Assembly (NCBI GenBank): GCA_964035545.1
Contig: OZ037772.1
Span: 3,501,538-3,565,537, forward strand
DNA from: Bugula neritina
Taxonomy: Eukaryota; Animalia; Bryozoa
Direction: 5' to 3'
Length of the DNA stretch: 64,000 nucleotides
The notes under the pieces were generated by a model that was given only the letters and a program-made list of their open reading frames with translations, had not been told where the DNA came from and made no database searches. Shown here in pieces: positions 7,559 through 43,732 of this stretch (positions within the stretch are counted from its first letter, which is position 1; the number at the start of each line of letters is the position of its first letter). The position numbers and the translations under genes are program-made.

Positions 7559-7575
7559 GAATAGGAATACAAGAC

Positions 7576-12198: not shown

Positions 12199-12204
12199 TT
12201 TAAC
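12147..12204 (-). promoter_or_regulatory. Programmed -1 ribosomal frameshift signal (G_UUA_AAC plus stem-loop/pseudoknot)
   Basis: Heptamer GTTAAAC (12204-12198) is in gag phase. A 6-nt spacer is followed by a perfect 9-bp stem GGCCCGCGG/CCGCGGGCC (12191-12183 and 12169-12161). Loop ACTCC is complementary to downstream GGAGT (12151-12147). Pol is in the -1 frame relative to gag. Confidence 0.8.
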
Positions 12205-13019
12205 GCCCCCTGGTATTGGGGTCGTCCTTTCTGTCCCTGGTCCTGATCAGCGCTACTCCAGCCCTGCCCCACAGATGTTGGGGGCATCCGCAAGGCCTGA
12301 CCGGGGCCAGCACCGGCCAGAATGGTTACCAATTGTCCCAGCATCTCTACCATGCGGTCCACTTCGGCTTCCAGCGGGAGGGCTTCGGAGCCTGTCGTAG
12401 CCCTGGCAGCGCTGACTCCAACTACTGGGGGGTTCCTTTGTGCTCGATGCATTTGGGTAGCCAACAGGTAAGCTTCTCCAGCCTTCAGGTCATCCTCTAT
12501 TCTGGTTATCCCTTTAGCTCGTAGGTGATGGTCTAGGCCCAGGTCGTTTAGGGACTGGACAAAGGCGTCATAGGTGTAACGCTCTTGGTGTTGTGCTGGC
12601 AGATCGCTATATGCAATCTGCGCCAGCTTCTTCACCGTCGCGGCATGTTCTTGCAGCGAGGTCCGCGGGGTGCGGCACAATCTCTCCAGCTTGGTCCTAG
12701 CGTCTATGACGGAGGTGCCAAAACGGGCCCGCAGCGCAGCCAGTATGCCGTCTACGTCCGTTCCCACTCCGTACGGCTTGGCTTGCTCCGTCACCGCCCT
12801 CCGCAATTGGATAAGGGCCACTCTATGCGGCCATTGAGCAACTTCCATTACCTCTCTAAATTCTTGTATAAATTGTTCGACATCTTCCGACCCAGTAAAG
12901 GTGGGAGCTTTCAAGTAATGTCTATAAGCTTCTTCTCCTTCACGATTCACAGGATTAACAGCATTTCTACGCTCACCTTCTACTGGGGGTGGTTGCATTC
13001 TAGCATTTTCAGTCTCCAT
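12153..13019 (-). CDS. gag: Gag, 288 aa
   Basis: First ORF after the PBS. It has the capsid-like motif KAPTFTGSEDVEQFIQEF...W and a helical core. No CCHC knuckle is visible. Confidence 0.9.
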   Translation of the reverse strand: METENARMQPPPVEGERRNAVNPVNREGEEAYRHYLKAPTFTGSEDVEQFIQEFREVMEVAQWPHRVALIQLRRAVTEQAKPYGVGTDVDGILAALRARFGTSVIDARTKLERLCRTPRTSLQEHAATVKKLAQIAYSDLPAQHQERYTYDAFVQSLNDLGLDHHLRAKGITRIEDDLKAGEAYLLATQMHRAQRNPPVVGVSAARATTGSEALPLEAEVDRMVEMLGQLVTILAGAGPGQALRMPPTSVGQGWSSADQDQGQKGRPQYQGALNCHGPRTHSLPAGLN

Positions 13020-13033
13020 CTTTGATATACACT

Positions 13034-13051
13034 ATCCCACTGCTGCCACCA
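13034..13051 (-). promoter_or_regulatory. Primer-binding site, tRNA-Leu type
   Basis: The minus strand reads TGGTGGCAGCAGTGGGAT 1 nt inside the 5' LTR. This is complementary to the ...ATCCCAC(C/T)GCTGCCACCA 3' end of animal tRNA-Leu(AAG/TAG). Confidence 0.85.
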
Positions 13052-13052
13052 C

Positions 13053-13357
13053 TGTTATAGTTTTCAGATTTAGGGTTGATGTGCCACCAAGAGAGTCTAT
13101 TTAACACTAGAGAAACTTCACCAGTTAAGTCGAGTAGATATCGTTATATTTAATGCAAGAATACATAATAAAAATCCAATGTACAACAGTAATGATACGC
13201 ACGTCTATTTAGTTTACAGCACTATCCTCAACTGAGCTAGTAGCGCGAAGCGGCTACTATTACTAATAATACAGCTTGGCTAATTGGCTAATACATTGTT
13301 CCGGGTCAATACGCAACCTCGCGTATTGTGCTGCTGGTAGCTCCACGAGCCACCACA
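13053..13357 (-). repeat. 5' LTR (305 bp)
   Basis: TG...CA termini, adjacent to the PBS, 304/305 identical to the other LTR. Confidence 0.97.
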
Positions 13358-17052: not shown

Positions 17053-20000
17053 ATGGCAGAATCCAGAGTAGTGAAAAAAAGACTAAACAATTCGTATCGC
17101 TGTGGGTACTGCTCGCAGTACTTCAACAAACTTGAAGATCCCAGAACTCTGCCCTGTCTGCATGTGTACTGCATGAGATGTTTGAAGACTGACATCGGTG
17201 GTAGGAAGGATCATATTAGATGTGCTTATTGTAGGTGAGTTACAGTACATAACACAATATATCATGTCATAGGCTTGCATATGATTTTCTAACTATCATC
17301 TAGGAGTTGTCTGATCTGTGTCTATGAAAAGCAAACAATACTGTATATTCTATGTGAACTCTGGTTACTAACTTGTGGAGTGTGTGGATATCTTCTCATT
17401 GGGTAGAGAAAGTATCTGTTATGTAGATTGCACCATCAGCTGTCCTTTCTTGTTGAATTGTGGTATACTGTTGGATGTCATGGGATTGGGGTTGTCTCCT
17501 CATTATATTACTTTGTTCTCATACAGTACAAGACTTGTTAGAGCAGTCATTCCCAATCTTTTTCATATCATTCCCACTTTCATACATGTTTACTATTAAT
17601 TATTCCCCCTTTAAAAAACGAAAAAATTTATGACTGACATGATGATAATATAGATTACAATGCAATATTTTTCCTATTACATTTGAATATAATATAATTA
17701 TTTCTGATAATTATATTATGCATGTATAAAACACAGAGCAGTTCAATTATTAATATTATGGCTGCAGCTGATGACATTGTGTCAGCTTGCTTTCAAACCT
17801 CCCACCCCAACCCCTAAACCCCAACCCCAATATTGAAATTAAAACACATTCATGTAGAAGTAGACTGAGATGACAGAACTGGTTAAATAGATAAGCTAAG
17901 ATGAATGCTTATAGATATACATGTACATGTAACTTGCAAGAGCTCAAAAGTCTTTACAAACTGCTTGAAATTTTCAAAATCAAAATCCAGGCTCCCCCTA
18001 AAAAGCCCAAAATTCCCTCTTATAGGGGGATTCTCCCAGGTTGGGAACCACTGTGTTGAACTGACTTGTGTTTACTATCTTCTTTCCTGCAATTATAAAC
18101 ATGTATGATGTTGTCATGGCAACAGAGTTGCTGTGGCACAAAGTACAGTTTACTAGTATGTAGTGATTGTGTAGTGAGAGTGGAGTGTCTGGTTATTGTC
18201 CATGGTTATGTGTAATCTGTAAGGAGTAGAATTATATTATTTTAATATAATGTTGAGAGAGGTACTTTTATAATGGCAGTTTGGTCAACAGCTTTAGTTC
18301 TAATGCAATAGACTCATAGCTCTGGAGTCTAGCAGCTGTTACTATTACCACTAGCTGTTCAAAATTCGGCCAACATCCGGGCTGCCAAAGCATAATAGCC
18401 ATTGACAAGGCCAAGCAGTCACTGGGAAATTATTTGACTAAAGAGCAGGTCTTATGACAATTAGACAGGAATCAGTGATTCTGTGACCTATTTAGTTAAA
18501 TCCAATGCTGACCTTTTGATTGATTATTAGATAGCCATCACAATTTTATTTGGTAGTGAGTTGTACAATATAATATTATGGGGTGTCAATCAGTGTCTAA
18601 TATAATCTGTGAATTGAGTGTCTCCTTTAGCTTTGATGAGTTGATTACTTCTTCTACCATCAGTCAGTTGTATTAAGTGTTACTTTGTACTGAGTCATGA
18701 ATAGTGTTGAAGATTTGGGCCTCTGTTATGCCAACCCACCCCCCCCCCTCTGACTTAGACTGTGACCCAACCTGCTGCACATACATAGCAGTACTACACT
18801 GAAGATAGTTAACATGTGTATGTGTCATCCTACTAGTAATGGATTACTAAGTGCAAGTTATCCTATGACTCACTCTTCTTATGCTAGCTGCACGAGATAG
18901 ACAACACTCACACGTGACACGCACTCACAGTGCACTAGCTCTTGAAACATTGCCAAGGATAATGAAATGACAGTTTCGCCCCACTCCTAGCAGTTAGAGT
19001 GGCAGGGAATAGTTGTAGTATGTTGTAGTATTGGCTCCTCAGAATTCACACTTCAGTAATTAGTTGCATTGCACAAACTTGCAACAATAGTGAATAATTA
19101 TTGACAATATGGCCTCCACTCAGTAGTTAACTAGTAATTTGTCTTGTCATTTTACTCTACAAGTTACAGTTGGAGTCTATTTGTTGAGTAGCAGTTCTTT
19201 GTCATGAGTGACTATTTTCCAGCATATTAAGTACATAATATAGTCAAGTGTGTTTGTGTGATAGCCTGTGGTCTATATAATGAATGTGTGTTGATGAGTT
19301 ATGAGTATTTGTCAAGGACATAGCTGTGTGTGTGGATGGAGTATTTCATTACTTGAGAAATACTAAACACAGCTAACACAGGTAACATACTGATTGCTAT
19401 ATATTGTAGGAAAGATCACTATGACATTACAGATCCCACAACACTACCAGTAGCTCAGCATGGAGACCCCTTAGAATACAAGTCTCCCCCCAAACCTGCA
19501 CCCATTCCCTGCGATGTGTGTAAAGTTGGAACAGAAGCTGCTGTGTTTTGTATGGAGATTAAAAAAAAACTGTGTCAGCAGCATCAAGAAGTGAGTCTTT
19601 CTTATATAATTTCTCAAGATTAGTTACTAAACCAGTTCTGGTTTGTGTGTAGAATATTATTGTAAAGAAATGTTGAGTCTGTGTGACTTTTTATACTAAA
19701 CACACAGTTTCACAGTGCAGTGAGTCAACTATGACAGAGTTGTTGGTGAAAATACAACCAACTAAACTGTTGACCTTTATTATACAGAATCACAGAGAGC
19801 TGATGGGAGATGGACATCAGTTTATTGACATTGAGGTCTACAGAGCTTCTCCCCAAAGATATACTATAACTGAATGTGAACATCATAAACAGGAACAGCT
19901 GACAGAAGTGTGTTCCAAGTGTCACCAGATATTCTGTATGAGATGTGATATGAGGACTGGCTGTAATGATAAGACAGGTATTTACTTGCTGTTTCTATTT

Positions 20001-23000
20001 CTGTAGAGAGAAACTGAGAAATGTTACAAGAACCTGTTATTTATTATTTTATTATTAAAGTGAGTTATGTAACAGTAAAAGAGGAAGTAAGTTTGTCAGC
20101 ATTAAGGTTTGTGTTAGACAGAAGTGGATAGTGCAGGAGTTTATATTCTCACTGTTATGTTGAATATTTAGTATATTTCATCATTCAAGTGTCTGTTTCC
20201 TTGATAAGATGGTATAGGCATAGCTTTAACTCAGTGGTGTCTCACCTTCTTCATACCATCCTCCTTTTTATGATTATTTTCTATTAAGTTTCCGCCTTTT
20301 TGATAAAATTGTAATTTCATTTATAAAGAAAATCTTGGACAGGTTGTTTTCCTAATAATTCATTGAGTGTAGAAAAAAGCACTTTGTGTTTGACATGAAT
20401 TAGTGTCTGCCACAACTTCAGTTTAGCTTTGAAAGCATTGATGCTGCTATTAAAAGCAATGAGTTGATAATTATACTCATTCATTTTAGGTTCAGAGTTT
20501 TTAGTACAGCAAATATGTGACCAGTCGCGACAAAACCGGGGATGTGGCGGCGTTTATAAAGTGTAGTAAATGAAGGTTTAATTTGGAAATACTTAAATTT
20601 GAAATTAATTTCCAGTTTTTAGGTTTTGAACTTTTCTAATACAAAGAAATCCAAGGATTTCAAAAATCATACTTTCGTAAGCATTTGATGATTCCTTCAG
20701 CTCTAAAATTGCATTTAAAGTTGGTAACTAAGGCATTCAATTTTTTAAATGATGAAAAAGATGCGAAGTTATCAAGTAAAGAAAGAAGACAATTTTAGTC
20801 ATTTTCATAGCATGAGATCTTGCAAATTTATTTTTCATCAAATGAATTTAGCTTACACCTCTTTCTTCGCATTGTCAGAAGCATCGTATTTAAAATCGAA
20901 GGCTAGTTTTAGTTTTTCATCGTGCTCCATCCAAAGTTAGCTTTTAAGTTACTGAGCTGTTTTGCCCTTTGGTGATAAATGCTAAACTTAATCTTTATCT
21001 TTAGCGTTCAAGCTTGAAAATCACAACAATACAGGTAATTATACTCAAAACCATAATTTACGCTACTAACTTAGAATTGTTGCTAGGATTATTTGTAGTT
21101 ATTTTCTTATTAATATTCATACTGATAATATCACTAGGAGTATGTCTATTCTATATTTATATTAGTAACTATTTAAATGACTCTCACTATGACTCACAGT
21201 TTGAGGTACGGTTACTCATAATGATAATCATAATGAATATCATTCATGATTTACTGATACTGGTATTTGGCAGTAAAACCAAATGTAGCTCATTAATATT
21301 AATACTAATAGTATAACTTAAGTAATGATTAATAATTAAATTCACTATTTGAGTCTGACTCTGAGTTTCGCCTTACTTACTTGATTTACTTGAAGATGCA
21401 ATCACGTTAGACCACTAGATTAGCGTAAGCACTTGATACTCATACTGATAGTATTATATTTATTGATTTATTCTATAGTTGATATTTAAATTTACATTGG
21501 AATTACTCTTAGTAACTTTTAGCCTCTGTCTTAGATTTTGTCAATACAGTTACTGATTACTGTTACGATTAACGGTTCCTTTTGTGATTTTTAAATTAGC
21601 TCAAAGTTTTATTTAAAATATAATGATAAAATATTTATCACATTATGCAGGCTTACAGTTACTGTCAAAGCTCAATTGATAACCCTATTTATATTGATAA
21701 AAGCATCACCTCTAACCAAATTGAAATGGTAAATGTGATTAAATGTAAATGAGTATAATGATGAAATATTAATGCGAGTTCATGGTGATTCTATAGTTGA
21801 CTGACTTAGTTCTTCAGTAAGTTACTTTTAGTCTTATTTAGTGAGTAGTAACACTAACTGAATGCATAAATAGTCTAAACTTTTTAATTTTATTATAAAG
21901 GATGAGCAAAAATTTATTCATATTTTAAAGTAATTTATTGAATTCAAATTGATTTTATAGTAAATGTCTGTAATAGATTCAGTTGCACTTAGCTAGCTTT
22001 TTTACTCAATTAAATGCTTGAGTGGTTAATAGACATTGCTTCAAAATTGCCAATTGCAGATATGCTAGATATTCAAGTGCATAATGTGTAATTTTACTGA
22101 TAATACTATGTTAATATAGAATAATCCGATATTCTGTACATTTTAGAAAGTGGACTTATGAGAGCATTAGAGTGAAGACTTATACCTACACAACTCTACT
22201 ACCTATCAATCTAACACTTCTAATGTAGACACTCTGAATTTTGGCTTGCAAGGTTATGGCTTCTGCTTATTTCATTCATAAAAAGGTTTGCAGTCTTTTA
22301 ATGATGTGCTTGAAAATTTTCAACAATTTTTTAAATTTAAATTGTTCTGTTTAATTCAATAAATTTAAATGTTGATAAAATGCAGGATGACAATTAACTG
22401 CTGCTATAGTAGTACCACAAGAGTGTTTAACCAACTAAATTTTTATAATATAACTGCGTATAGTTTCTAATCAAGCTACCGTTTTCTTTTGTTATTTAAA
22501 AAAGTCAACATTGTACTTGCAGCTCTGGAATAGACAATAGATGGGTAGATTGGCAGGATGGATGTCAAGTAGCAGCATCTGTAATTGTTAGAAAATCAGC
22601 TGATGATAGTGATGAAGCTTTTGCCACACACATGATGTTATGTGTTCATACTCCGTAAACTCATATTATGAAGACCAAGGAAGTAGAAAGATGAAAAGTG
22701 CCTTTTTTGCAAAAACCGTAGAAGCTACCTAATTTTCTTCTCTTGATTAGAGTTAATTCAAGCACAATGGTTGTATCCAGGCTGGATTTTTTACTGCATT
22801 TAATTAATTTTTTAAAATAATGTGTTTGATGTTTTAAATGTGAATATTAATGCCTAATAAAACTCAAAGTTCTAATAGCTGATTTTATGTTTATATTTTC
22901 AACATCAATTGCTAAATTTAGTTGCCGTTAGAGATTATAAAGATATTTATGAATGAATCTCGAATGATCTCATAATAGTCAAATAATTTTCTCATAAGTG

Positions 23001-26000
23001 TTCTACTCATTAAGCAATAACTATGAAACAGCACAGCTCAATAGCTGCAGTTTGATATATTACACAATATATTAGAGGAGAGGAAGATATTCAATGTATA
23101 ACAGGAAGCAGCTGCCATTTTGTTTTATATGACTTCCTGCTGACTTGGATGCCTAATTTAAATATCTCAACACACAAACTTGCTGAAACATCCTCTTCTT
23201 TGCTGGAATTGTTAAACCTTTCATTAAATAAACAAAATAAAAAGCAAATTGACAAATGAATTAGACAAAAAGTTTGGCGGCCATATTTGACCTAATTTTA
23301 AGTTGAGGCAGCATGAAATTTAGTTTAACAGAAAGCCCAAATTTACACAATTATTTTGGTACTAAATTTGTCACCATTCCTATTATACAAAGACCCGTTG
23401 CTAAGGCTTGTAAATTGTAAACAAATAATTCTCAACTTATTCTAGAGTTGCCAACTTTAAATGCGATTTTCTCGAAACAGTAATTTCGAAATTTTAAAAA
23501 CGTTAAGGTTTTTAAATATTAATATCTCGAGTTCTATTTATGCTAGAGACTTCAAATAAAGTGCAAAATGTTTGGAAAAGTCTGCTCTATCATTCCATAG
23601 TAATAACTAGGTTTTCAACATTTTATATACATCCCTTGTTTTGTGGTGCCAAGTCACATATATCTACTAGGTATGCAGTAAGTAGTTTGTGGCGATCAGT
23701 TCTACTGACTGCAAAAACTTCCTGTTGGTTTTTACTTTCAATAAACCTTTTAGCCTTCATTCGTAGTAGGAGGGGTAGCAGCTAGAGTACGGTGAATATT
23801 AGACACATGGATGTAGAAGTAAACTTAGATTGTAGAGTGTAATGTGGATAAATAAATGAACTACATAAAATGAAGGAGTTATAATTATACATATTCATGT
23901 AACCTGGAACACAAGGCAAGAGCTCAAAAAGCTGATAACAAACTCTGTGAAATTTTAGAAATGAAAACCCCTAAAAAACTCAAATTTCCTGTGAAGGGGA
24001 AATTCCCCAAGGTTGAGAGCAACTGCTTTAATTTTTTCAACTATTTCATTCCAAGTGCAGTGAATATAAATGACATCTTTCTAGTCCAAGTCCAACTGTG
24101 TAGTTATTACATAGTATGTGTGTAGTGATACATCATCAACCTGTAGTTACAGGTAGTAGGTGTAGAATAAGTACAATGTCACATCTATAATAATGTTTTT
24201 ATGAATCGTATGATTTTATGTATACAGAGGAGACAGTAGCATCCCATGACTTGACATCTTTGAGTGATTTGTCTTGTGAGTTACGAGAAAGTCTGACTGG
24301 TGGAATAGAGACTCTGTCTGAGAAAGTTGCAGAGTTGAATGACATCTCAAAGGATGCCTGGAAAGAACTGAGTAAAATAGAAGATGAAGTGAAGAAGATG
24401 GTTGCCAGAGTAAACTCTGCAGCTGACGCTCAGGTATGCTGACATGGTGATGTCATCTAATGTATTTCTGGTTGGCTGAAATTAGGTTTTGCATTTGGTT
24501 TTTGAGCTGTAAATAGAAATGAATTTCATTTGCCACTAGAATTAACTGACCATTAAAGCATTATTATTCTGTGAACAAGTAGCAGTAGTCATTCATCACA
24601 TGTTACTCAGTGCAGAGGAACCTGTCAATACAGATGACTCACTCATCCTTCTGCAACTGTCAATCACTCACACAGAGGTTGGCTGTGTGAGTGATTGACA
24701 GGTGTCAGGAGGAGGAGACTAGTCACGTGATGTACTAGCTCTCTGCTGTGTATAGAGTGTCACGTGACTGAGTCATTGTCCACTCAGTGGGTGATCTGTC
24801 ACTTTCATTTCAAGTGCAGAGGTTGTGAGGTGCAGAAGTGGTTACACTGTGTTACTATTTATTAGATAGAAGAGATTAGAAAGAGAGCTACAAACCTGAG
24901 GCTAGAAATATATGGATATTTGAAGAGCTGCACACAGATAGTGGATAATTATAGAATAGAGCTGGCCTTGAGTAAGACAATGGGCAGACAGTCTCTGCTG
25001 GACACAGTACAACATGCAGTTGATAAGTTCAATGATGCAGGGATTGTGAGAGACTACAAAGAGATGAGTGAGAAGGTGGAAAAGGCTACAGATATTGGTG
25101 TAATAGAGAAGTGTGTACTTCCAGACACCATCTTGGTACCAACATGTAGGTGGAGTCTATAAATAGTAACACTAACTATAAATAACTTTCTGCTTGTAAT
25201 CATGTGAGTTGCTTTCACTGAATGTTTTAATAGTAGAATAAGTAGATAGAGTTTATTTATTAGAGAATTGAGTTTTGTTCTACTCTCACATTATGAGACA
25301 TTTCTGCAGTGTTTCAGAGTATATGATGTATAAGTGAGCTGCTAAACTGTGTTATGCTGACTACCTGCTGTCAGTATTAACAAGATATTCTCACTTAGAC
25401 CTGTGCCTCACGCAGCAACTTGTAGTAACTACAGACTGCTTGTATTTAAAACATCTTTTTATTTTAAGTTTGAAAAGCTGTTCCCACCTCCTCAGGTGAT
25501 GAGATTCTCAAGTTATAGAATTGTTATTTTGTTGTTGCAGACAGTGAAGACAGTCTGGGACTGAAGCTGCTGCAGCCACCATCTTCTCTACAGTCTGATG
25601 GACTTCCTGTACGTGACTGGTGCGTCTCAGTAAACATCTCAGCTGATGGACATCTGATGTGTCGGACACTAGAAGGTGTAGAAGTAATAAATAGAGACAC
25701 TCTGGATACTATCAGCTCAGTGAAGGACACCAACACTACAGAGTGGAGGGAGATAATCCAACCTGAAGGAGTGATGGTTGGCAGCTGGTATAACAGAGAG
25801 GAGAAAACAGCTGAAGTCTTACTTCTTGATCCGAACTCCTTTGAGAAGACTCGCTCTCTCTACAAGCATTCAGTAGATAGACCCACTTACTATAGAATAG
25901 CTCAGCACTGCTCACTGCTCTGTATTGTAGACACGATAGAGAAACAGCTGGTAGTCTGTAACCTAGTTGACAATAAAATACAGAAGTTCCCACTTCCTGA

Positions 26001-27344
26001 GATGAAGAACCCTTTCCCTGTATGCATCCTCCCAGACTCAACTCTCCTCATAGGAGACTTCACTGCAGATGGTAAAGTGAGAAGATATAAAGTGGAAAAC
26101 ACAACTCTCACTCTGATGTGGGAGTTCCCTCGCATCTCACGACCATCTGGTATTTCCTTTGATCCAACATCTGAACTGATTCACATCTGTACATGGAGAG
26201 GACCTCTCCTCATCCTCTCACTTGAAGGTAAATACTCTGTTTATTATAGTAAGTCTAGTTATTTTATATATAATTATGTTAATAATCAACAGTAAACAAC
26301 TTCCACTCATAAGATATATTATGATATTGTTAGTATTTATCAAGTCACTGATGTTATTTTTAGCTAAAAGTTATGTAATAAAGAGTGTAACATGCTGATA
26401 GTAGATGTTATATTCTTCATCACATGACTTGTAGCTAATAATAATATTAGTGAATAATATTGCCTCCCTGCAATAAGTTTATTTCCAGCTGCAGTAACAT
26501 GCAGGATGTAAGCACAGGTAGAAGTGTATATTATACTGTATAGGTTTAATGTGTACTCTGTGTAGTGTGCAGTGAGCTCTTAGTAAACTCTCTATTCAGT
26601 CTTCCTTTCCAAGGGTTCACCTGGTAGAGTAGAGGATAGGGACTCCACACTGCTGAGTGAGTTGGTGCTGCAAGGGGTTCAAACCCACCTATCAGCATGT
26701 CTAGTTAGTATACTATGCAAGTGTTTTACAGTAATTTTAGAGGTGCTCAGTCTAACAACTGTACAGACTGCCAGCTACACATGAGTTATAAGTTGTAGTT
26801 TGACTTCAGTCTAGTGCTGCTGTTGTTTTGGTCATCAGATAATTTAAATATGAATAATTTGATACTTTCTGACTGCCATTACTGAGACTATTGTAATTTG
26901 ATGATGGCTGGTAGAGCAGTGTTTGCTGGTGGGACTCAGGTGGCTGTGGTTGGTTCTTGTCAAGTATTTAATATGTGATAATGTTGGAGTAGCTGCAGTA
27001 GTATTAGAAGTAGACATGTGGGTGTGTTCTCGCTCAGAGCCACAGGCTAAGTTTGTGGGTCAAGGTCAATACAGTTGTATAAGGAGACACTATTTTCTAT
27101 TTGAGTATTTACTTCATGCATGTAACCTGCTGAGTTCCATCTTTAAAGGCAGTCTGTCTGTTTCTCTCAATACACCAACTGATACAATATGATGCTAATA
27201 TTTACAGGTCAACTGGTGCTTACTGTTCCCAGAGAAAGTCTCGGGGTGGCTCCCGAGGTGTGGGACATTGCTGTGTATAACAGAGACACAGTGTTTTTAG
27301 CATGTGAAGATGGTGGACTGAGGAGATACACAATAAAATACTAA
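17053..27344 (+). CDS. TRIM (RBCC) E3 ubiquitin ligase-like protein with C-terminal NHL-like beta-propeller, copy A, 620 aa, intact
   Basis: Exons: 17053-17234 (C3HC4 RING CGYC..LPCLHVYCMRC..CAYC), 19410-19590 (B-box1), 19788-19977 (B-box2), 24228-24433 and 24866-25145 (coiled coil), 25541-26227 and 27208-27344 (propeller, e.g. PSGISFD). All introns are GT-AG and phases are consistent, total 1863 nt. AATAAA at 27522. Confidence 0.92.
17544..18053. mobile_element. hAT-like MITE in TRIM intron 1 (paralogue 57855-58361)
   Basis: CAGTCATTCCCAATCT ... GGTTGGGAACCACTG inverted termini. The TSD is degenerate. Confidence 0.6.
20232..24025. mobile_element. hAT-like MITE in TRIM intron 3, split by a later insertion (uninterrupted 320-bp paralogue at 60661-60980)
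   Basis: CAGTGGTGTC(T/C)CACCTT ... AAGGTTG(A/G)GAGC(A/C)ACTG termini. 8-bp TSD ctttaact/ctttaatt in A and ctttaact/ctctaact in B. Confidence 0.7.
20516..23658. mobile_element. 3.1-kb non-autonomous TIR DNA transposon, TA-flanked, family unassigned, absent from copy B
   Basis: TA|TGTGACcagtcgcgACAAAACcgGGGATGT versus reverse complement of right end TA|TGTGACttggcaccACAAAACaaGGGATGT. Inner inverted block gcatttaaagttgg at ~20710 and ~23450. Intron 3 is 4250 bp here and 900 bp in copy B. Confidence 0.8.
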
Positions 27345-28062
27345 ACTTATCAGCTACAGTTTACTAATAATCAGCTCAGTGAGGTGCTGAGAGATAAAAT
27401 GGATAATATTTGTCATCAACATAATTATATTCATTACAATTCATCAATACACACACTCTGTAATTATAGTTGGATATGAGATGTTTTACTGTATCAAATA
27501 TATGTTGCTATTTTACCATCTAATAAAGTTTATTTGTTAGCGAAAAAATAGTCTGGTTTCATGCCTCATTAGCTTTAGTTCAAGTTGAGTTTGGTTAGTA
27601 AAAATAATCTATACTGGAGCAGTAACTGTAAATGACTTGTTTGTGGGAGAATTTATTCACTGAATTGACATGCAGGTGCAAGTACCTCCAACATGACTAA
27701 GTAAATTTATTCCAACCATTCATAATAATATACATTCCATTGCTGTGTACAACAGCATTGAGTAGCCAATCAAATTGTTTCTTGTCATGCAATCAGGAAT
27801 CTGATAAATAATATATAAGGCAATCAACTAGATATAAACACTGTATTACTCTACACATGAGCTGTCTATGATACAGCTGTTTTGTAAACTGTGTGTAATT
27901 TGATGAGTTTAGTTCAATTGGTTGCAGTTTAATTATGACATGTTCCCCATTCACCTGGTAGAAATACCTTGTGTGCACAGACAAGTTGTAATGACTAACA
28001 GAAACTTTTTCAGTAGGTTCCAGTTCATCTTGAATATAGTACAGCTTGTTGTCATTTGGTCT

Positions 28063-28803
28063 CCATAGTATTGATGGTACACTACCTTGTTTGGCCTCAA
28101 TAGTATTGATAGTATACTACCTTGTTTGGCCTCAATAGTATTGATGGTAGACTACCTTGTTTAGCCTCACTAGTATTGATGGTACACTACCTTGTCTGGC
28201 CTTAATATTATAGATGGTATATTACCTTGTTTGGCTTCAATAGTATTGATGGTAGACTACGTTGTTTAGCCTCACTAGTATTGATGGTACACTACCTTGT
28301 CTGGCCTTAATATTATAGATGGTACATTACCTTGTTTGGCCTCAATAGTATTGATGGTATACTACCTTGTTTGGCCTCAATAGTATTGGTGGTAGACTAC
28401 CTTGTTTGGCCTCAATAGTATTGATGGTATACTACCTTGTTTGGCCTCAATAGTATTGATGGTATACTACTTTGTTTGGCCTCAATAGTGTTGATGGTAG
28501 ACTACCTTGTTTAGCCTCAATAGTGTTGATGGTACACTACCTTGTTTGGCCTCAATAGTATTGATGGTAGACTACCTTGTTTGGCCCTAATAGTATTGAT
28601 GGTATACTACTTTGTTTGGCCCTAATAGTATAGATGGTACATTACCTTGTTTGGCCTCAATAGTATTGGTGGTAGACTACCTTGTTTGGCCTTAATAGCA
28701 TTGATGGTATACTACCTTGTTTGGCCTCAATAGTATTGATGGTATACTACTTTGTTTGGCCTCAATAGTGTTGATGGTACACTACCTTGTTTGGCCTCAA
28801 TAG
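28063..28803. repeat. Minisatellite, 35-bp unit CTACCTTGTTTGGCCTCAATAGTATTGATGGTA(T/C/G)A, ~21 copies
   Basis: Head-to-tail units (28082, 28117, ...) with no unique spacers. Confidence 0.95.
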
Positions 28804-30552
28804 TCTTGCTAACAGCACAGCTTACAAGATTTAACTAATTTAACTTGTTGAGATTTACATGAATATAATACATATGAAATGTGAAAATAGCATTAAAAGT
28901 CAAGCAAGGAATTCACATGTTGACACAATTATATACTTTCACTTGAAGGTAAGCTTGATGAACCAATATGAACTGTTCACAGAGTTTACTGTGTAGGATT
29001 TGCACCTAGAATATTTAGTTACATCAGAGCTAAGTGAAAAATCTAACAGTTGATTTATTCTGTTGAAAGTTAATGTGTTGAGTATTGATCTTATTACCCA
29101 ACTTCACCCTTTTTACTGTAGAGTTTGTTGATGTAAGTTCACTTAATTAAACTATCCTCATGCAAGAAGTGGGGGTGGAATATTATTGTGAATTTATGCT
29201 TTACTTGTTATTATAGGGTCTATTTAGGCAAAGCTATTTCACCAGGTTTGTGATTGCTAACACTTTATTCTATTTATTTCAAGATACTAATAAAACTGTA
29301 CAACTATCAAAAACACGTTCCATAATAAGAGAGAGAATATACAAGACTTTACAATAACAATTCCAAGTGCTCTCTGCCTGCTAGTCAAATAGACCAGGGC
29401 CCACTACAAGTATTCAGCTCCGCCTACTACTAATTATTAACAGTCACTGATTGGCCATCACGATGGCACCATCACACTAGTTGATCTGCATGCTGCAAAA
29501 TGCATCATGTCCTCTAGTTAAAGTGTGTGCATGGAGTTGTCCTTTCGATATAATAACATAATGTACAAAATCTCTGCAATATGCCACCTGGGATATCTGT
29601 ATGAGAAACTTAACCAATCAACTAGCAGCATCTTCACTATTTAATGAAATTATCAAACTATATTATTTAACTGTAACATTATCCTAGTGAAACCTCTTAT
29701 CTGTTCCTCCTATTCACTAATCCTCAAATTATTCTCCTCTACCAAATCAATACATTGTGCAGACTCCATATTCAATCTCCTCTACATACAGTTTATATTC
29801 CAGCTATCAGAGTCATGATTCTACATCACATGAATGTTCTCTACTTTAACAAGAGAATAGCCAACTATAAAAACCTGCTATAGCACACAATATAGCAACC
29901 TGTTATAACATGACATACAGTACATCAATATTCATTCACTACACAAAATATCTCAATACACATAACAACTGGAGCTGCTGAAGTTCAATGGCTTATACAA
30001 GTTGAATTGAACAAAACACTACGTTGTTCTTCAGCATATCAACTAGTATGAGTAGTGTGGAGAGATCTTTTATATATATAAAAACTTGTGTTTGAAGGAA
30101 ATATTAAATTATATTATTCCTCTTAGCATCACATGTAGCATGAATATCAACTTATAGTTAGTGAGTTACTAGAAGTTTCTTTGTAACGGAAACCAGTCCG
30201 GGTTCCCCTGCAGTTCCATCTCAACGAGTCTGGCCTGAGCTGAGGTCACGGCATGATGACATCATTCACTAGGTTCTTCTTGGTGTCTGGAAATTTTCCA
30301 CCAGTTACTCCAGTGACTGAAAGTGAAGCACTAATACCAGTGACACGTCTCATACTCACTTGCTGAGTCATTGTGATTATTAGTTGATGACTTAATGTTT
30401 TAGTGAAGTTATAGTTATAGTTAACTTAAAGTCCTACTGATACTGATAGCTAATGTGCCATTCAGTCTCATCTTCATTCTCAGTAATTGTAATACTGATA
30501 TTAAGACTAACTAACGCCTAATGCTAAGTTCAACTACTAATTATTACACTTC

Positions 30553-30796
30553 TAGTAGTAGTAGTAGAAGCAGTAGTAGTACTAGTAGTAATGAGAGTAC
30601 CAGTAGTAGTACTAGTAGCGTTAGTAGTAGTAGCGGTAGTAGTAATGGGAGTACTAGTAGTAGTAATGGGAGTACTAGTAGTAGTAATGGGAGTACTAGT
30701 AGTAGTAGCAGTAGTAGTGGTAGTACTAGTAGTAGTAGCAGTAGTAGTGGCAGCAGCAGTAGCAGCAGCAGTAGCAGTAGTAGTAATGAGAGTACC

Positions 30797-30839
<43 letters not shown>

Positions 30840-31245
30840 CTAGTAGTAGTAGTGGTAGTAGTGGTAGTAGTAGTAGTAGTAGTGGTAGTAGTAGTAGTAG
30901 TAGTAGTGGCAGCAGCAGTAGCAGCAGCAGTAGTAGTAGTAGCAGTAGTAGTAATGAGAGTACCAGTAGTAGTAGTAGTAGTACTAGTAATGGTAGTACT
31001 AGTAGTTGTAGTAGTAGTAGTAGTACTAGTAGTAGTAGTGGTGGTAGTAGTGGTAGTAGTAGTAGTAGTGTAGTAGTAGTAGTGGTAGTAGTAGTAGTAG
31101 TAGTAGTGGCAGCAGCAGTAGCAGCAGCAGTAGTAGTAGTAGCAGTAGTAGTAATGAGAGTACCAGTAGTAGTAGTAGCAGCAGTAGCAGTAGTAGTAGA
31201 GGTAGTAGTAGTAGTAGTAGAGGTAGTAGTAGTAATGAGAGTACC

Positions 31246-31295
<50 letters not shown>

Positions 31296-31518
31296 CAGTA
31301 GTACTAGTAGTACTAGTAGTAGTGGTGGTAGTAGTAGTAGTGGTAGTAGTAGTAGTACCAGTAGCGGTACTAGTAGTACCAGTAGCAGTACTAGTAGTAG
31401 TACCAGTAGCAGCAGTAGCAGTAGTAGTAGTAGTAATGGTAGTAGTAGTAGTAGTAGTAGCAGCAGTAGCAGTAGTAGCAGTAGTAGCAGTAGTAGTACT
31501 AGTAATAATGAGAGTACC

Positions 31519-31550
<32 letters not shown>

Positions 31551-31603
31551 CAGTAGTACTAGTAGTACTAGTAGTAGTGGTGGTAGTAGTAGTAGTGGTA
31601 GTG

Positions 31604-31646
<43 letters not shown>

Positions 31647-31833
31647 CAGTAGTACTAGTAGTACTAGTAGTAGTGGTGGTAGTAGTAGTAGTGGTAGTGG
31701 TAGTAGTAGTAGTAGTAGCAGTACTAGTAGTAGTACCAGTAGCAGCAGTAGCAGTAGTAGTAGTAGTAATGGTAATAGCAGTAGTAGTAGTAGCAGCAGT
31801 AGCAGTAGTAGTACTAGTAGTAATGAGAGTACC

Positions 31834-31871
<38 letters not shown>

Positions 31872-32142
31872 CAGTAGTAGTAGAGGTAGTAGTAGTAGTG
31901 TAGTAGTAGTACTAGTAGTAGTAGTAGTAGCAGCAGTAGTAGTAGTAGCAGTAGTAGTACTAGTAGTAATGAGAGTACCAGTAGTAGTAGTAATAGTAGT
32001 AGTAGTAGTAGCAGTAGTAGTAGAGGTAGTAGTAGTAGTGTAGTAGTAGTACTAGTAGTAGTAGTAGTAGCAGCAGTAGTAGTAGTAGCAGTAGTAGCAG
32101 TAGTAGTACTAGTAGTAATGAGAGTACCAGTAGTAGTAGTAA

Positions 32143-32187
<45 letters not shown>

Positions 32188-32970
32188 CAGTAGTACTAGT
32201 AGTACTAGTAGTAGTGGTGGTAGTAGTAGTAGTGGTAGTGGTAGTAGTAGTAGTACCAGTAGCGGTACTAGTAGTACCAGTAGCAGTACTAGTAGTAGTA
32301 CCAGTAGCAGCAGTAGCAGTAGTAGTAGTAGTAATGGTAGTAGTAGTAGTAGTAGTAGCAGCAGTAGCAGTAGTAGTACTAGTAGTAATGAGAGTACCAG
32401 TAGTAGTAGTAGTAGTAGTAGTAGCAGTAGTAGTAGAGGTAGTAGTAGTAGTGTAGTCGTAGTACTAGTAGTAATGAGAGTACCAGTAGTAGTGGTGGTA
32501 GTAGTAGTACCAGTAGCAGTACTAGTAGTACCAGTAGCAGTACTAGTAGTAGTACCAGTAGCAGCAGTAGCAGTAGTAGTGGCAGCAGCAGTAGCAGCAG
32601 CAGTAGTAGTAGTAGCAGTAGTAGTAATGAGAGTACCAGTAGTAGTAGTAGCAGCAGTAGCAGTAGTAGTAGTAGTAGCAGTAGTAGTACTAGTAGTGGT
32701 AGTACTAGTAGTGGTAGTAGTAGTAGTAGTAGTACTAGTAGTAGTAGTGGTGGTAGTATTGGTAGTAGTAGTAGTAGTGTAGAAGTAGTAGTGGTAGTGG
32801 TAGTAGCAGTAGTAGTAGTGTAGTAGTAGTAGTAGTGTAGTGGTAGTAGTGGTAGTAGTAGTAGTAGTAGTAGTAGCAGCAGTAGTAGTAGTAGCAGTAG
32901 TAGTAATGAGAGTACCAGTAGTAGTAGTAGCAGCAGTAGCAGTAGTAGTACTAGTAGTAATGATAGTACC

Positions 32971-33008
<38 letters not shown>

Positions 33009-33155: not shown

Positions 33156-33604
33156 ATGGAGGTTACCAATTCTGTCACTCTTGCAGGTCAACATACAACT
33201 CTACAGGAAACTAAAGACAACAGAACGGGGCTGACAAATCAACCAATCAAATTATAAATAAAGAGGAACTCATGACTCACTCTGTCCAGATGGTGTCGGT
33301 AAATGAGGCCATTTTTGTTCACCCAAAACGTGTTGAATCCATCTTTTTTACTACAAAACAATCATGTGACCAGCATCATGTGACCAACTCCATATTATTG
33401 CAGAAAGCAGTAGAAAGTGTTAAACTTGCGAAGTACAAGTAGCCATGTTGGAGGAATTTACTAGCAGAAAGGGACTCACATGAAGTTTTTCCTCGTCTCC
33501 TCCACGAAACCGTCTTTCTTGTTGTACGTGAAGAGGTTCCACTTCCAGAACATGAGGGCTCTCCACTGGGACACGCCCCTCATTGTCCACCTGTTGGGAA
33601 GTAA

Positions 33605-34358
33605 TATATCTTCTTTATACTGTAATATATCCTCTCTATACTGTAATATATCCTCTCTATACTGTAATATATACTCTCTATACTGTAATATATCCTCTCT
33701 ATACTGTAATATATCCTCTCTACACTGTAATATATCATTTCTATACTGTAATATATCCTTTCTATACTGTAATATATACTCTCTACACTGTAATATATCA
33801 TCTCTATACTGTAATATATACTCTCTATACTGTAATATATCCTCTCTATACTGTAATATATCCTCTCTATACTGTAACATATCCTCTCTATACTGTAACA
33901 TATCCTCTCTATACTGTAATATATCATCTCTATACTGTAACATATCTTCTCTATACTGTAATATATCCTCTCTATACTGTAATATATCCTTTCTATACTG
34001 TAATATATACTCTCTACACTGTAATATATCCTCTCTCTACTGTAATATATCATCTCTATACTGTAATATATCCTCTCTATACTGTAATATATACTCTCTA
34101 TACTGTAATATATCCTTTCTATACTGTAATATATCCTCTCCATACTGTAATATATCATCTCTATACTGTAATATATACTCTCCATACTGTAATATATCAT
34201 CTCTATACTGTAACATATCTTCTCTATACTGTAATATATACTCTCTATACTGTAATATATCCTCTCTATACTGTAATATATCTTCTCTACACTGTAATAT
34301 ATATACTCTCTATACTGTAATATATACTCTCTACACTGTAATATATAATCTCTACACT
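33605..34358. repeat. Minisatellite, 21-bp unit CTCTATACTGTAATATATCCT, ~36 copies (intronic)
   Basis: Tandem repeat. It gives the 7-aa periodic ORFs (YCNISSL and others). Confidence 0.96.
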
Positions 34359-34849
34359 GATTATTATACCTGACTTTAATGGCCCCCGTCATCAGGGTGA
34401 GATGAAATGTTAATTATGTATAGATTTACGTCTGCGTACAGCAGATTGCAGAGTAACCTCAGCTTTGTGAGTTGCATCGCATACTTGGCTATTCCCCTGA
34501 AACAGTGAGTGAGAGAGTAAAGACTCAGGCTACACGTGGGAATACTGCAGACATAATATGACAGAGTTGTACATATAAAACAAGTATACATTGTATGTAC
34601 CTATAGTACAAGGCATATACATTGTATGTACCTATAGTACAAAGCACATAGTACAAGACGTAAGTACATGCAATATACACTCACTTGAAAGTCTTATTTT
34701 TGCCGGTGAAGTTGTTCTCGAACACAAGGTCTGTGGTGTAGTGATTGTAGTAGTGAACCGATGACTTGAAGAACACAGGAAACTACAGAAAGAAGAGATC
34801 AGCATCAACAGTAGCAACTACATGCCTTGACAGAGTAACTGAGTTACCA

Positions 34850-35020: not shown

Positions 35021-35286
35021 CAGATCAATAGTTACTGGCACCTCAATTTCCCCACAATTCTCACCTGTTCTGTGATCTTCACCTTGATCTCTTCCAACTT
35101 GTTATGACTTGGTAACCTGCTGTCTCCACTGTTGGAATCTGGTCTTATACCCTCACTCTCATTGGACAAGTTGCTAGCTAGTAACGTGCCAGCAGATGGT
35201 GTGTTGGTGTTTAATGCTGAGTTATTACTAGTGTTTACTGCTGACTGAGAGAGATTCGGCCTCAACTACAAAACATAACAGGATAA

Positions 35287-35985
35287 TCTACAGTACAAGG
35301 AGAGGATCTACAGTACAAGGAGAGGATCTACAGTACAAGGAGAAGATCTACAGTACAAGGAGAGGATCTGCAGTACAAGGAGAGGATCTACAGTACAAGG
35401 AGAAGATCTACAGTACAAGGAGAGGATCTACAGTACAAAGAGAAGATCTACAGTACAAGGAGAGGATCTACAGTACAAGGAGAAGATCTACAGTACAAGG
35501 AGAGGATCTACAGTACAAGGAGAAGATCTACAGTACAAGGAGAGGATCTACAGTACAAGGAGGGGATCTACAGTACAAGGAGAGAATCTACAGTACAAGG
35601 AGAGGATCTACAGTACAAGGAGAAGATCTACAGTACAAGGAGAGGATCTACAGTACAAGGAGAGGATCTACAGTACAAGGAGAAGATCTACAGTACAAGG
35701 AGAGGATCTACAGTACAAGGAGAGGATCTACAGTACAAGGAGGGGATCTACAGTACAAGGAGAGGATCTACAGTACAAGGAGAAGATCTACAGTACAAGG
35801 AGAGGATCTACAGTACAAGGAGAAGATCTACAGTACAAGGAGAGGATCTACAGTACAAGGAGAGGATCTACAGTACAAGGAGAGGATCTGCAGTACAAGG
35901 AGAGGATCTACAGTACAAGGAGGGGATCTACAGTACAAGGAGATGATCTACAGTACAAGGAGAAGATCTACAGTACAAGGAGAGG
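35287..35985. repeat. Minisatellite, 20-bp unit CTACAGTACAAGGAGA(G/A)GAT, ~35 very homogeneous copies (intronic)
   Basis: Exact 20-bp periodicity is visible in the column alignment. Confidence 0.97.
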
Positions 35986-36364
35986 GGGAATTATTTTCAA
36001 CATGAAGAGTGTAAGCAAGTTCCAATAACAAGAAGCTAAACATTTGCCAACTTTGAGTCCTCTAACAGCTGCAAGGCCATCTTAAGCTTTTACCTAAACA
36101 AATGATGCCTAAGAACTTTTTAATCCCCACCCCAGAAAGAAACCTTGTGTCCATCACCTGTAAGACACACCATGTTTCTAATGTATTCCTTAGCTACAGT
36201 TTCACAAGAGAATGGATACTCTACCAGACGTGTGTATGATATGTGAGTGGTAGATGAGCTCACCTGGTCAGTCATTGAAAGTCGAATGAGTTCACTGGAT
36301 ATCACTCCGTCTGTGTCACACAGGAAGTGCTTCTTCTGAGAGTTCTGGACCTTCGTCTTCGCTC

Positions 36365-40875: not shown

Positions 40876-41654
40876 AGTATTATTCACAGTACTAATAGTA
40901 ATAGTATTAGAGTAATACTAATTGTAACACTACCACTAGTAGTAGCAGTAGTGCTAGTAGTAGTAGGCTACATGATGATGATCATTATGATTATGATTAT
41001 GAAGATGGTTATTACTATAACTATTACGGTATGAGTATAACTATAACTGTATTAATATTTGATTTTATTTTGCATTGCTAATTGAAGACCATGCGTTAAA
41101 ATTAACTGTTTCTCTCTTTTCAAGTTGCACACTAATAGACATATATGCTTTCAATTTTTTTGGTCTATCTTTATGTTGTGAAACTTGACCAGTATGACTA
41201 CGACTAACTGTAACTAGAATAAAATATTGGAGGATAGAGAAGTTCCATACAGTTACACCTCCTTTGACTTGTGCTACCGTCGGTAGTGCTAAAAGAGTGG
41301 AGCCAAAGAAAAGCATAATCACAGAATTCACAGCCTGCTGGTTTGAGATTTTTGTGGTCTAGAGATTGTACTGGGTTACAGAGATCTTTTTCCCGTCTGT
41401 GAATTTTTGATCCCTGCGGTTGTTTCTGACTGTGAGTAGTTGGAGGTGTTGAGGGAGTGGGCTCACTGGGTAGGCTATATTATTGTAATCATATTAACCA
41501 ACTTGACAGTTTACTAATTCATTGTCTAACTCTGTCTGTCTTAGTCTAGTAACACTATTTATTTACTTATTAATTTATTTATTTGACTAAATCTTGTCTG
41601 TCTTTGTCTAGTAACACTATTTATTTATTTATTTACTTATTAATTTAATTAAAT

Positions 41655-42795: not shown

Positions 42796-43732
42796 TTTTG
42801 TTCTAAACTCTATTAGAGTTTAAAAGTGTTGCTTTCTGTTGTACTTATATCTGTGCTGGCCAGGATTTTTGAATGATTTTTGTAATGTATTTACGTAACA
42901 GAGTGTAAAATTAAAGCTGAATTTGCCTTATTTTTTATATATTTTGTTTGTGATTATCAGCATTTTTATTTGTAGAGATAAAATTTATCAAAAGAGTTTC
43001 ATACACTTGTATTTACTTAGACTCGGACTGTGTTGGTGTGTGTGGGGGGGGGGACTTTGCTCAGACACCTGCAAGTACGAGCTGTCATGCACACTAGGCA
43101 GGACGTGTCAAGGTGGCAGGTGCTTCTATCCGTGTACTGACAACACAGCCTGTCCTAGTGATGGACAGATCTGTCACCATGGTGTCTGTAAAGAGGGCTG
43201 TCAGGTGAGTAGTCACTATGACTTATACTGCGAGTTATCGATGATTTTCATACTATGAGTTATGACTACCTACTATAGTTTATACTGTGAGACCAAGTAG
43301 CTGCTGTAACTTATACTGCAAATCATGACTAACTGATATCACTCATACTGTGAGTCATGACTAACTGATATCACTTATACTGTGAGACCAAGTAGCTGCT
43401 GTAACTTATACTGTGAGTCAATTATCAAAAATAGCAAAGAAGTAGAGATATACTGTGTATTAAATTTAGTAAAGTTACCTAATTATGACTGGATGCTCTT
43501 CCTTGCATCACCAAAGGTTTTTACTGGGGCTTAAACCCATTACTTTAAGTTTACTAAGCAAACACTCTAACCCCTAGATCACTGCTGCACTTGCTAATGA
43601 TCACACTTTATGTATGATTGGTACCCAAATAGGACAGAGCAAAGATAACTAAAGCGAAGATAGAATATATTTTGACACTGCTGAAAAGAATTAAGCATAG
43701 ACCGTGTTATCTCATAAAGCCTTAATATAATT

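Follow-up and report, generated by a model that had tools for sequence, protein, structure and literature searches.

A tandemly amplified TRIM-type gene family in Bugula neritina with a conserved RING/B-box/coiled-coil half and an NHL-type propeller under site-specific diversifying selection

Why should two neighbouring TRIM-type genes keep the same RING domain and differ, patch by patch, in the domain at the other end of the protein? The question is raised by genes A and B, which lie in a 64,000-nucleotide stretch of the genome of the bryozoan Bugula neritina (assembly GCA_964035545.1, contig OZ037772.1, positions 3,501,538–3,565,537 of the forward strand). We call this stretch the window and number it from its first letter; both genes are on its + strand. 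Rapidly diversifying TRIM ligases are a textbook part of vertebrate antiviral immunity, and have been thought to be tied to the B30.2 domain and to be absent from invertebrates. Gene A consists of six exons (582 codons) that encode a RING, a probable B-box, a presumed coiled coil and a propeller, and gene B is a related copy. Comparison across the family to which the two genes belong shows that the putatively catalytic and dimerising RING/B-box/coiled-coil (RBCC) half is under purifying selection, and that fixed positions, recurring blade by blade in the propeller, are under strong diversifying selection.

The propeller exon of gene A (25541–26227, 687 nucleotides) encodes a linker and blades 1–5 of an NHL-type propeller, probably six-bladed. 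It is preceded by a polypyrimidine tract and cag and followed by gt, and the corresponding exon of gene B (62622–63308) has the same bounds. The two exons differ at 40 of the 684 compared nucleotides, with 24 amino-acid differences and eight silent codons. The NG86 estimates of non-synonymous and synonymous divergence (dN 0.061, dS 0.060) give a ratio of 1.01; the introns of A and B diverge by 4.4%. The RING exons (17053–17234 and 57366–57547) have three differences, all silent, and no amino-acid change, and the B-box exons differ by six nucleotides and five amino acids. The initial annotation, made from the DNA letters, had counted about 24 amino-acid and about eight silent differences in the propeller and none and three in the RING by hand, and the nucleotide comparison returned exactly these numbers. 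All six multi-nucleotide swaps that it named are present: with residue n of A's propeller exon beginning at 25543 + 3(n − 1), they are AGA to GAA (R85E and R219E), AGA to GTA (R113V), CGA to GTA (R200V), TGC to GAC (C123D) and ACGATA to TACAGA (T131Y/I132R). Likewise, each of the seven basic residues of A that it listed is replaced in B, where R41, R85, K88, R113, R197, R200 and R219 are G, E, E, V, H, V and E. The patchy clustering of the changes goes beyond chance, as 19 of the 24 amino-acid differences fall on columns that are positively selected family-wide and make up 20% of all columns (binomial p = 6 × 10⁻¹⁰). A whole-exon ratio of about 1.0 between A and B is compatible with neutrality, so the evidence of selection must come from the family.

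The term 'TRIM paralogues' used in the initial annotation understates the extent, for the two copies are part of an array of about 100 genes. The 216-Mb assembly was searched in six frames with the exon translation, and this search, whose copy counts are lower bounds, found at least 96 full-length copies of the propeller exon, only three of them with stop codons. On the window's contig (C8), 63 full-length copies lie at 0.004–4.7 Mb; 10 lie on contig C3 (15.6–16.3 Mb), 8 on contig C2, and the others are scattered. For alignments we sampled 70 copies together with flanks of 1.5 kb. AG and GT are retained around the propeller exon in every one of the 70 (three contain a stop), and the exon lengths of 675, 684, 687, 690, 693, 696 and 705 nucleotides are all multiples of three, with every indel in frame. 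Inside the window the whole unit is present as a segmental duplication (1–26899 and 51619–63997, 90–95% identity), of which copy A carries two insertions.

The first half of the protein is nearly constant across the family, for which the RING and B-box were compared as protein identities, the nucleotide data for those exons being those of A and B. In 53 other copies the RING exon protein is 100% identical to that of A, and in 22 more it is 93–98% identical; these include copies whose propeller exon is only 82–84% identical. The B-box exon protein is 92–98% identical over the core array. Coiled-coil exon 2 keeps 96–99% nucleotide identity in 30 copies, and the introns are very similar across copies in a 30-copy alignment. 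Two pairs of loci, L006/L008 and L017/L012 (C8, 0.64–0.69 and 2.03–2.07 Mb), lie about 1.384 Mb apart with introns 99.8–99.9% identical, and pairs at this offset still differ at up to 30% of hypervariable residues; the offset reflects either an uncollapsed haplotype or a block of at least 100 kb that was duplicated very recently. Outside the window, at 6.63–7.22 Mb of the same contig, is a second TRIM-propeller cluster with at least 30 propeller exons (22–27% identical), RING exons 34–40% and B-box exons 31–42% identical to those of the array family. TRIM-propeller genes have thus expanded in more than one family of this genome.

Mean pairwise NG86 dN/dS is 0.48 and 0.66 in the coiled-coil exons, 1.11 in the propeller exon and 0.78 in the ungapped part of the last exon; intron divergence (K) in the family is 0.085. 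The site model that we fitted was FUBAR-like: a GY-type codon model with F3x4 frequencies and a 7-alpha by 15-beta grid, whose weights came from expectation-maximisation. It was applied to the two propeller exons joined (66 genes, 290 codons) and, as a control, to the two coiled-coil exons joined (161 codons). Branch lengths came from FastTree and were rescaled by maximum likelihood, and both an exon tree and a whole-locus tree were used. For the propeller, global omega was 1.49, 58 sites had P(beta > alpha) > 0.9 (32–40 of them above 0.99), 41 sites were purifying, and 2dlnL, twice the difference in log-likelihood between the unrestricted model and one with beta ≤ alpha, was 931. Fifty-six of the 290 sites had P(dN > dS) > 0.9 on both trees. 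The coiled-coil control gave a global omega of 0.53, only 1–3 of 161 sites with P > 0.9, 28–29 purifying sites and a 2dlnL of 3 (22 with the locus tree). Inspection of the amino-acid alignment shows isolated columns with 7–15 different residues beside invariant ones, often in an i/i+2 arrangement around a conserved P, C or W. The last exon has hypervariable patches with in-frame indels at 27249–27263 and 27306–27311, set in surrounding DNA that is nearly identical, introns included.

The selected codons also stand out in a cross-validation that uses no tree. Twenty-three hypervariable codons were set by entropy on every second gene; in the remaining genes these codons had dN 0.75 and dS 0.27, compared with dN 0.049 and dS 0.079 in framework codons (dN/dS 0.62) and a dS of 0.086 in framework codons adjacent to hypervariable ones. 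Where a pair of genes has the same amino acid at a hypervariable codon, the codon itself differs in 7.0% of cases, compared with 5.1% elsewhere. Together with the normal dS of the adjacent codons, this indicates that the excess is codon-specific and non-synonymous, and that it reflects neither a hot spot nor an old segment left unhomogenised. Local hypermutation was rejected on the same two measurements.

Among 11 disjoint closest pairs (intron divergence ≤3%), the proportions of non-synonymous and synonymous differences in the propeller were pN 0.048 and pS 0.035, introns differed at 0.014, and coiled-coil pN was 0.0055. Propeller pN exceeded intron divergence with a Fisher p of 2 × 10⁻⁵¹, and pN/pS was 1.37 (p = 0.007). 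The five closest pairs have 60 non-synonymous and 7 synonymous changes. Loci L011 and L014 show 7 intronic and no coiled-coil differences over about 2,600 aligned intron and coiled-coil bases (introns 0.3% different), and 36 of their 49 differences fall in the 687-nucleotide propeller exon, as clusters of 2–6 nucleotides at hypervariable codons.

Some gene pairs have introns 99.7% identical and hypervariable residues 70% different. On average 76% of hypervariable residues differ whatever the intron distance (Spearman 0.13, compared with 0.70 for the framework), and the 66 genes carry 65 distinct hypervariable haplotypes. The hypervariable sites are enriched in Arg (16.6%, compared with 4.1% in the framework) and Trp (11.4%, compared with 1.1%), and also in Gly, Tyr and His. 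Summed over the variable sites, net charge runs from −5 to +6 in the genes compared and is +1 in A and −2 in B, so the 'charge reversal' of the initial annotation is one instance of a general spread. Collectively, these data support well the conclusion that a recognition surface is under diversifying selection.

What kind of protein carries these sites? Exons were searched and folded separately, and the fold model is that of the 228-residue propeller exon. The RING of gene A matches Pfam zf-RING_UBOX at 31.6 bits (cut-off 25.2) and zf-C3HC4 at 23 (cut-off 21), and all eight C3HC4 zinc ligands (C17, C20, C35, H37, C40, C43, C57 and C60) can be read from the translation. The B-box, whose motif is split over exons 2 and 3 and was searched apart, reaches 22.2 bits with zf-B_box (E = 1.5 × 10⁻⁴), just below the cut-off of 24.1; the translation shows the Cys/His pattern C-x2-H-x8-C-x2-C-x4-C-x2-C. 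The coiled-coil exons have weak Pfam matches only, to the coiled-coil families DUF1664, SlyX, CENP-F_leu_zip and Prefoldin_2. No filamin (IG-FLMN) domain is present: an RNA joint (25145 to 25541) links coiled-coil exon 2 straight to the propeller exon, in which about 25 linker residues precede blade 1.

No Pfam match to SPRY/B30.2 was found in the C-terminal exon, whose domain is instead a propeller. A profile built from 48 family members matches Pizza6, an idealised NHL domain, at E = 1 × 10⁻²⁵, PknD at 2 × 10⁻¹¹, TRIM2 at 1 × 10⁻⁶ and Brat at 4 × 10⁻⁶, as well as NHL-2, TRIM71, TRIM3 and Thin. A phmmer search of 1.84 billion representative proteins returned 30 matches; the 14 at E < 10⁻¹⁰ are all short metagenome open reading frames (ORFs), and the remote ones are NHL-repeat proteins with PF01436. 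The close protein relatives all come from JGI metagenomes; the one whose contigs were looked up is labelled AY690838, which is the GenBank accession of the B. neritina mitochondrial genome (PMC2678162), and the runs in which the stretch occurs bear the labels of a 'symbiont metagenome', a coded organism, and marine or biofilm metagenomes. A word-index protein search found only metagenome ORFs of exon length, and in a language-model atlas the exon falls among NHL clusters, mostly molluscan, the nearest of which carry PF01436. The AlphaFold2 model of the exon, built from the 48-member alignment, has pLDDT 89.7, pTM 0.84 and 19 strands, or about 4.75 blades. When the Foldseek list was re-aligned with VIA, the top matches were the NHL domains of Thin, TRIM2, Mei-P26, TRIM71, Lin41, TRIM3 and Brat (Z 18.6–19.1, root mean square deviation 2.5–3.3 Å over 199–210 residues); the top 15 are almost all TRIM-NHL proteins, with other six-bladed propellers close behind (YWTD, Z 18.8; Pizza, 18.0). 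The exon aligns to residues 468–699 of TRIM2, whose domain ends at 744, indicating that it comprises five blades and that the 44-residue last exon probably supplies the sixth, to which the repeat motif in that exon points.

The variable sites recur at equivalent places in the propeller. The strongest in the propeller exon are W26/V28, R41/L43, E67/R69, R113, T131, N156/F158, F173/A175, R200 and W218/R219, and the next-strongest, in the last exon, are A-P-E, W18 and E33/D34. They lie at the starts of strands 1, 5, 9, 13, 17 and 21 and just after strands 2, 6, 10, 14, 18 and 22. In each blade they flank the conserved P, C or W with which strand a opens, and take up two or three residues after strand b; in the alignment with Pizza they correspond to the x-P-x of its N-T-P-x-G motif and to the D-x-x loop after its V-Y-V-T-D strand. 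The top face of NHL domains is formed by the b–c and d–a loops and is the RNA-binding platform of Brat (PMC4015489), and the TRIM2 NHL domain has its C-terminus at the bottom (PMC9634614). Within a blade, one face carries both the beginning of a given strand and the end of the following one; the chain finishes with the strand after the final variable loop, and the bottom position of the TRIM2 C-terminus fixes strand parity, which would place the variable loops on the top face. The variable residues (about 25–55) are thus predicted to occupy the d–a and b–c loops of the top, putative ligand-binding face.

Three expectations of the initial annotation agree with these findings. Many sites with dN > dS were found, by the site model, the cross-validation and the closest pairs; the variable residues map to one face of the propeller, as judged from the strand topology of the AlphaFold2 model and published conventions, and are not scattered or buried; and an NHL-type propeller, seen in the profile, AlphaFold2 and VIA matches, stands in place of B30.2.

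The structure of gene A was worked out from splice signals, reading frames and RNA. Its RING exon (17053–17234) starts with the ATG at 17053, encodes the C3HC4 RING and ends in AG before a GTGAGT donor; since a splice acceptor lies about 25 nucleotides before the ATG, there should be one more, non-coding exon on the 5' side. The B-box exon (19721–19977; phase 2 in, phase 1 out) is followed by coiled-coil exon 1 (24228–24433), coiled-coil exon 2 (24866–25145), the propeller exon and the last exon (27208–27344), which encodes blade 6 and ends with the stop codon at 27342–27344. For transcription, Logan contigs from four runs in four studies, three of the runs labelled with the organism, were laid on 23900–27900. 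Their depth is high over four blocks with little between, exon depth being far above intron depth, and this profile also delimits coiled-coil exon 1. GT..AG joints from 24433 to 24866, from 25145 to 25541 and from 26227 to 27208 occur in three studies of the organism and account for both ends of coiled-coil exon 2 and of the propeller exon and for the start of the last exon. The splice to 24228 was taken from loose RNA-contig ends, whose sequence agrees with the final part of a paralogue's B-box exon. Precisely at the two variable patches of the last exon (window 27248–27306), RNA contigs stop or fork and run on into the patch sequences of other paralogues, indicating that several family members are expressed in the same samples.

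In gene B, the RING exon (57366–57547) was recognised with its ag/gt bounds, and the B-box exon (60150–60406), coiled-coil exons 1 (61307–61512) and 2 (61947–62226) and the propeller exon by comparison with A. The last exon lies just past the end of the window, at about window-equivalent 64315–64451, and is intact (locus L010). The initial annotation had left room for one copy to be unexpressed and decaying; A and B are undamaged in all exons, and transcription and splicing are seen at the level of the family. Intron 2 of A holds about 3.5 kb (20352–23877) more than that of B: positions 18825–20352 of A correspond to 59232–60783 of B, after which 23877 of A corresponds to 60836 of B. Neighbouring copies therefore have introns of unequal length.

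About 10 kb upstream of the gene B RING exon is a 30-bp tandem repeat (47247–47466, + strand) with a kappaB-like decamer (GGGGTTTCCC, GGAATTTCCC, GGAATTCCCC) in nearly every unit. The motif GGGRNWYYCC occurs 20 times in the window, mostly in this repeat, compared with 1.65 expected. The 1.6-kb block around the repeat (47000–48600) has at least 40 occurrences in the array, and most of the copies checked lie 8–11 kb (range about 8–17) upstream of a RING exon on the same strand; copies of the block also share the offset of about 1.384 Mb (720945/2105248 and 625488/2010442). The repeat may be a promoter or enhancer of the family, or may simply have been carried along in the duplicated unit. Being one minisatellite among many in this region, it is suggestive only, and as a sign of inducibility by infection it is weak evidence. 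Minisatellites crowd the intergenic stretch between the two genes; they have periods of 17, 35, 9–12, 21, 20, 13 and 17 bp and span 1–1800, 28055–28950, 30433–33000, 33475–34400, 35146–36050, 41519–42800, 43598–44400 and 51619–52792; the array at 30–33 kb has a strong G-over-C skew (0.28–0.48). A young long terminal repeat (LTR) retrotransposon upstream of gene A (3375–13357) is bounded by 305-bp direct repeats (3375–3679 and 13053–13357) that are 99.7% identical. Its body is GC-rich (46–58%) and includes a Gypsy element (3945–7558), and the whole is absent at the homologous site upstream of gene B.

What might such a family do? We think it reasonably probable that A and B, both intact, come from a family of about 100 TRIM-type E3 ligase genes that arose by tandem amplification and whose top faces form a repertoire against fast-changing non-self targets. 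Each paralogue's top face would bind its own protein or RNA target, and the constant RING would ubiquitinate the bound target or signal. The family would then constitute a germline-encoded repertoire against viruses, other intracellular parasites or mobile elements, and so be a functional analogue of the TRIM5/finTRIM B30.2 proteins and of the expanded F-box/MATH-BTB adapters of nematodes. We infer this immune or restriction role by analogy; proteins or RNAs of viruses or other parasites could be the targets, as could mobile elements, factors of the symbiont or molecules of conspecifics.

As to where the variation comes from, many variants of a patch are found again in one to six further paralogues, and others are confined to a single gene. 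Shared variants and signals of recombination together make it appear that short-tract gene conversion and point mutation supply and shuffle the variation, and that selection retains the differences. Templated micro-conversion between paralogues probably supplies much of it. A more daring proposal, which we put forward only tentatively, is that the family is a germline 'cassette' repertoire, in which about a dozen top-face patches are reshuffled among about 100 genes by micro gene conversion, providing intracellular, ubiquitin-coupled recognition with nearly as many specificities as genes. Such a repertoire may read non-self RNA rather than protein.

Several observations weigh against the reading of the family as a selected top-face repertoire. 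All four gametes are present at 28–35% of informative site pairs at every distance, which can inflate tree-based site tests. With recombination so pervasive, trees are unreliable, and the tree-free tests carry the weight. In the close pairs, synonymous differences in the propeller exceed intron differences (0.035 compared with 0.014); this points to templated micro-conversion, together with partial 'synonymous' credit for multi-nucleotide codon changes, and not to point mutation alone. The near-identical pairs 1.384 Mb apart could be uncollapsed haplotypes, in which case those comparisons are allelic and not paralogous. The RNA contigs are collapsed over paralogues, so that they show transcription and splicing for the family and cannot be assigned to A or B. 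In the propeller exon of either copy, no Pfam family is matched at E ≤ 1, the NHL repeat (PF01436) included. The folded 228-residue exon covers five of the six blades, and the face assignment follows from strand order and published convention, not from measured geometry.

The alternative that survives best accepts a real, diversifying repertoire and changes its target: self/non-self recognition among colonies, gamete or maternal-zygotic conflict, control of the vertically transmitted bacterial symbiont, or recognition of transposon RNAs. We regard it as rather unlikely, although any arms race or balancing selection would give the same evolutionary signature. The NHL top face binds RNA in Brat (PMC4015489), the region is rich in young retrotransposons, the organism occurs in 'symbiont metagenome' samples, and bryozoans are colonial and able to fuse. 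On the other hand, no exon that we read contains a signal peptide or membrane segment, which makes direct cell-surface allorecognition unlikely, and known allorecognition systems use a few highly polymorphic loci, not 100 paralogues. Nothing in the analysis ties the genes to a symbiont or to transposons.

The hypervariable patches could, alternatively, be a by-product of concerted evolution, with conversion homogenising the introns and framework and the patches being merely missed or old escaped segments that reflect no adaptation. The pervasive four-gamete violations, the sharing of patch variants among several paralogues, the close likeness of introns across copies and the somewhat raised synonymous differences in close-pair propeller exons would all fit. 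We nevertheless consider this very improbable. Conversion tracts cannot skip single codons, and the dS of adjacent codons is ordinary (0.086 compared with 0.075) beside a dN of 0.75. The excess is specifically non-synonymous (60 compared with 7 in the five closest pairs), all indels are in frame, the sites fall at structurally equivalent positions of every blade, and the coiled-coil control, with the same history, shows no such sites. A pure gene-conversion artefact was rejected on the codon-specific non-synonymous excess, the blade periodicity and the coiled-coil control.

There is equally little to commend the view that amplification has merely multiplied developmental TRIM-NHL RNA regulators of the usual Brat/LIN-41/TRIM71 kind. 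Domain order and fold are alike. However, flies, worms and mammals have 3–5 such genes (PMC4015489), which belong to a slowly evolving TRIM group (PMC2533329), whereas there are about 100 copies here and the RNA/ligand face is the fastest-evolving part; the filamin domain is absent, and the sole relatives at E < 10⁻¹⁰ are the 14 short ORFs from metagenomes, of which one or more come from samples labelled Bugula. Least credible of all is relaxed constraint on redundant, decaying copies, with the A/B dN/dS of about 1 reflecting neutrality: it agrees with the whole-exon ratios (1.01 for A/B, 1.11 for the family), but 93 of the full-length exon copies (at least 96) have an open frame, splice sites are undamaged and 70 of 70 lengths are multiples of three, 41 purifying sites stand beside 56–58 positive ones, framework dN/dS is 0.62 and the family is transcribed and spliced, and pseudogene decay was accordingly rejected as contradicted by the open frames, the intact splice sites and the non-uniform dN/dS.

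The selected top-face repertoire matters in several respects. Across about 100 genes of one array, the NHL propeller serves as a hypervariable, putative recognition module, NHL TRIMs having so far been regarded as a few conserved developmental RNA regulators. Full-text literature searches brought up no account of bryozoan TRIMs or of an NHL TRIM family that is hypervariable or positively selected, nor any relevant oyster TRIM expansions. The selected sites are unusually clean and blade-periodic, and they outline a paratope-like surface that is open to direct testing. The locus is also a natural experiment in which diversity is kept at single codons while gene conversion homogenises the surroundings. 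Moreover, the immunogenetics of Bryozoa is almost undescribed, and the family supplies a first concrete candidate for a diversified set of immune or non-self receptors in that phylum.

How does the family compare with known systems? Thomas, in 2006, reportedly described expanded F-box and MATH-BTB adapters of nematodes and plants whose substrate domains are under site-specific positive selection, and is said to have proposed that they act in innate recognition of pathogen proteins. Those families resemble the Bugula one in having hundreds of E3-component paralogues, a conserved ligase-docking domain and a selected substrate-binding domain. They differ in being adapters of cullin ligases, whereas the Bugula proteins are self-contained RING ligases, and in fold and phylum.

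With canonical TRIM-NHL proteins (Brat, Mei-P26, LIN-41/TRIM71, TRIM2, TRIM3, TRIM32 and NHL-2) the family has in common its domain order, a structural match of Z about 19 over 200–210 residues and profile similarity. The canonical genes, 3–5 per genome (PMC4015489), are conserved, single-copy and under strong constraint, and most have a filamin domain before the NHL domain, whereas the Bugula family has none and its top face is hypervariable. Fast-evolving group-2 TRIMs have been reported absent from invertebrates, with TRIM-NHL proteins placed in the conserved group (PMC2533329). In evolutionary pattern the likeness is to TRIM5alpha and the teleost finTRIMs (group-2 TRIMs), the latter numbering from dozens to more than 80 genes (PMC3137616): a constant RBCC ligase scaffold with a C-terminal recognition domain, positive selection in surface loops, lineage-specific tandem families and cytosolic proteins. 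The recognition domain there is B30.2/SPRY, with three or four long variable loops, whereas here it is an NHL-type beta-propeller with single variable residues repeated blade by blade; the resemblance is evolutionary, and the Bugula family is not a member of either group. TRIM5alpha and finTRIMs are counted as restriction factors, to which the Bugula family is likened by its evolutionary pattern. If the tentative 'cassette' proposal is right, the family would be an invertebrate counterpart of TRIM5 and the finTRIMs, built on a fold known so far only from conserved developmental RNA regulators.

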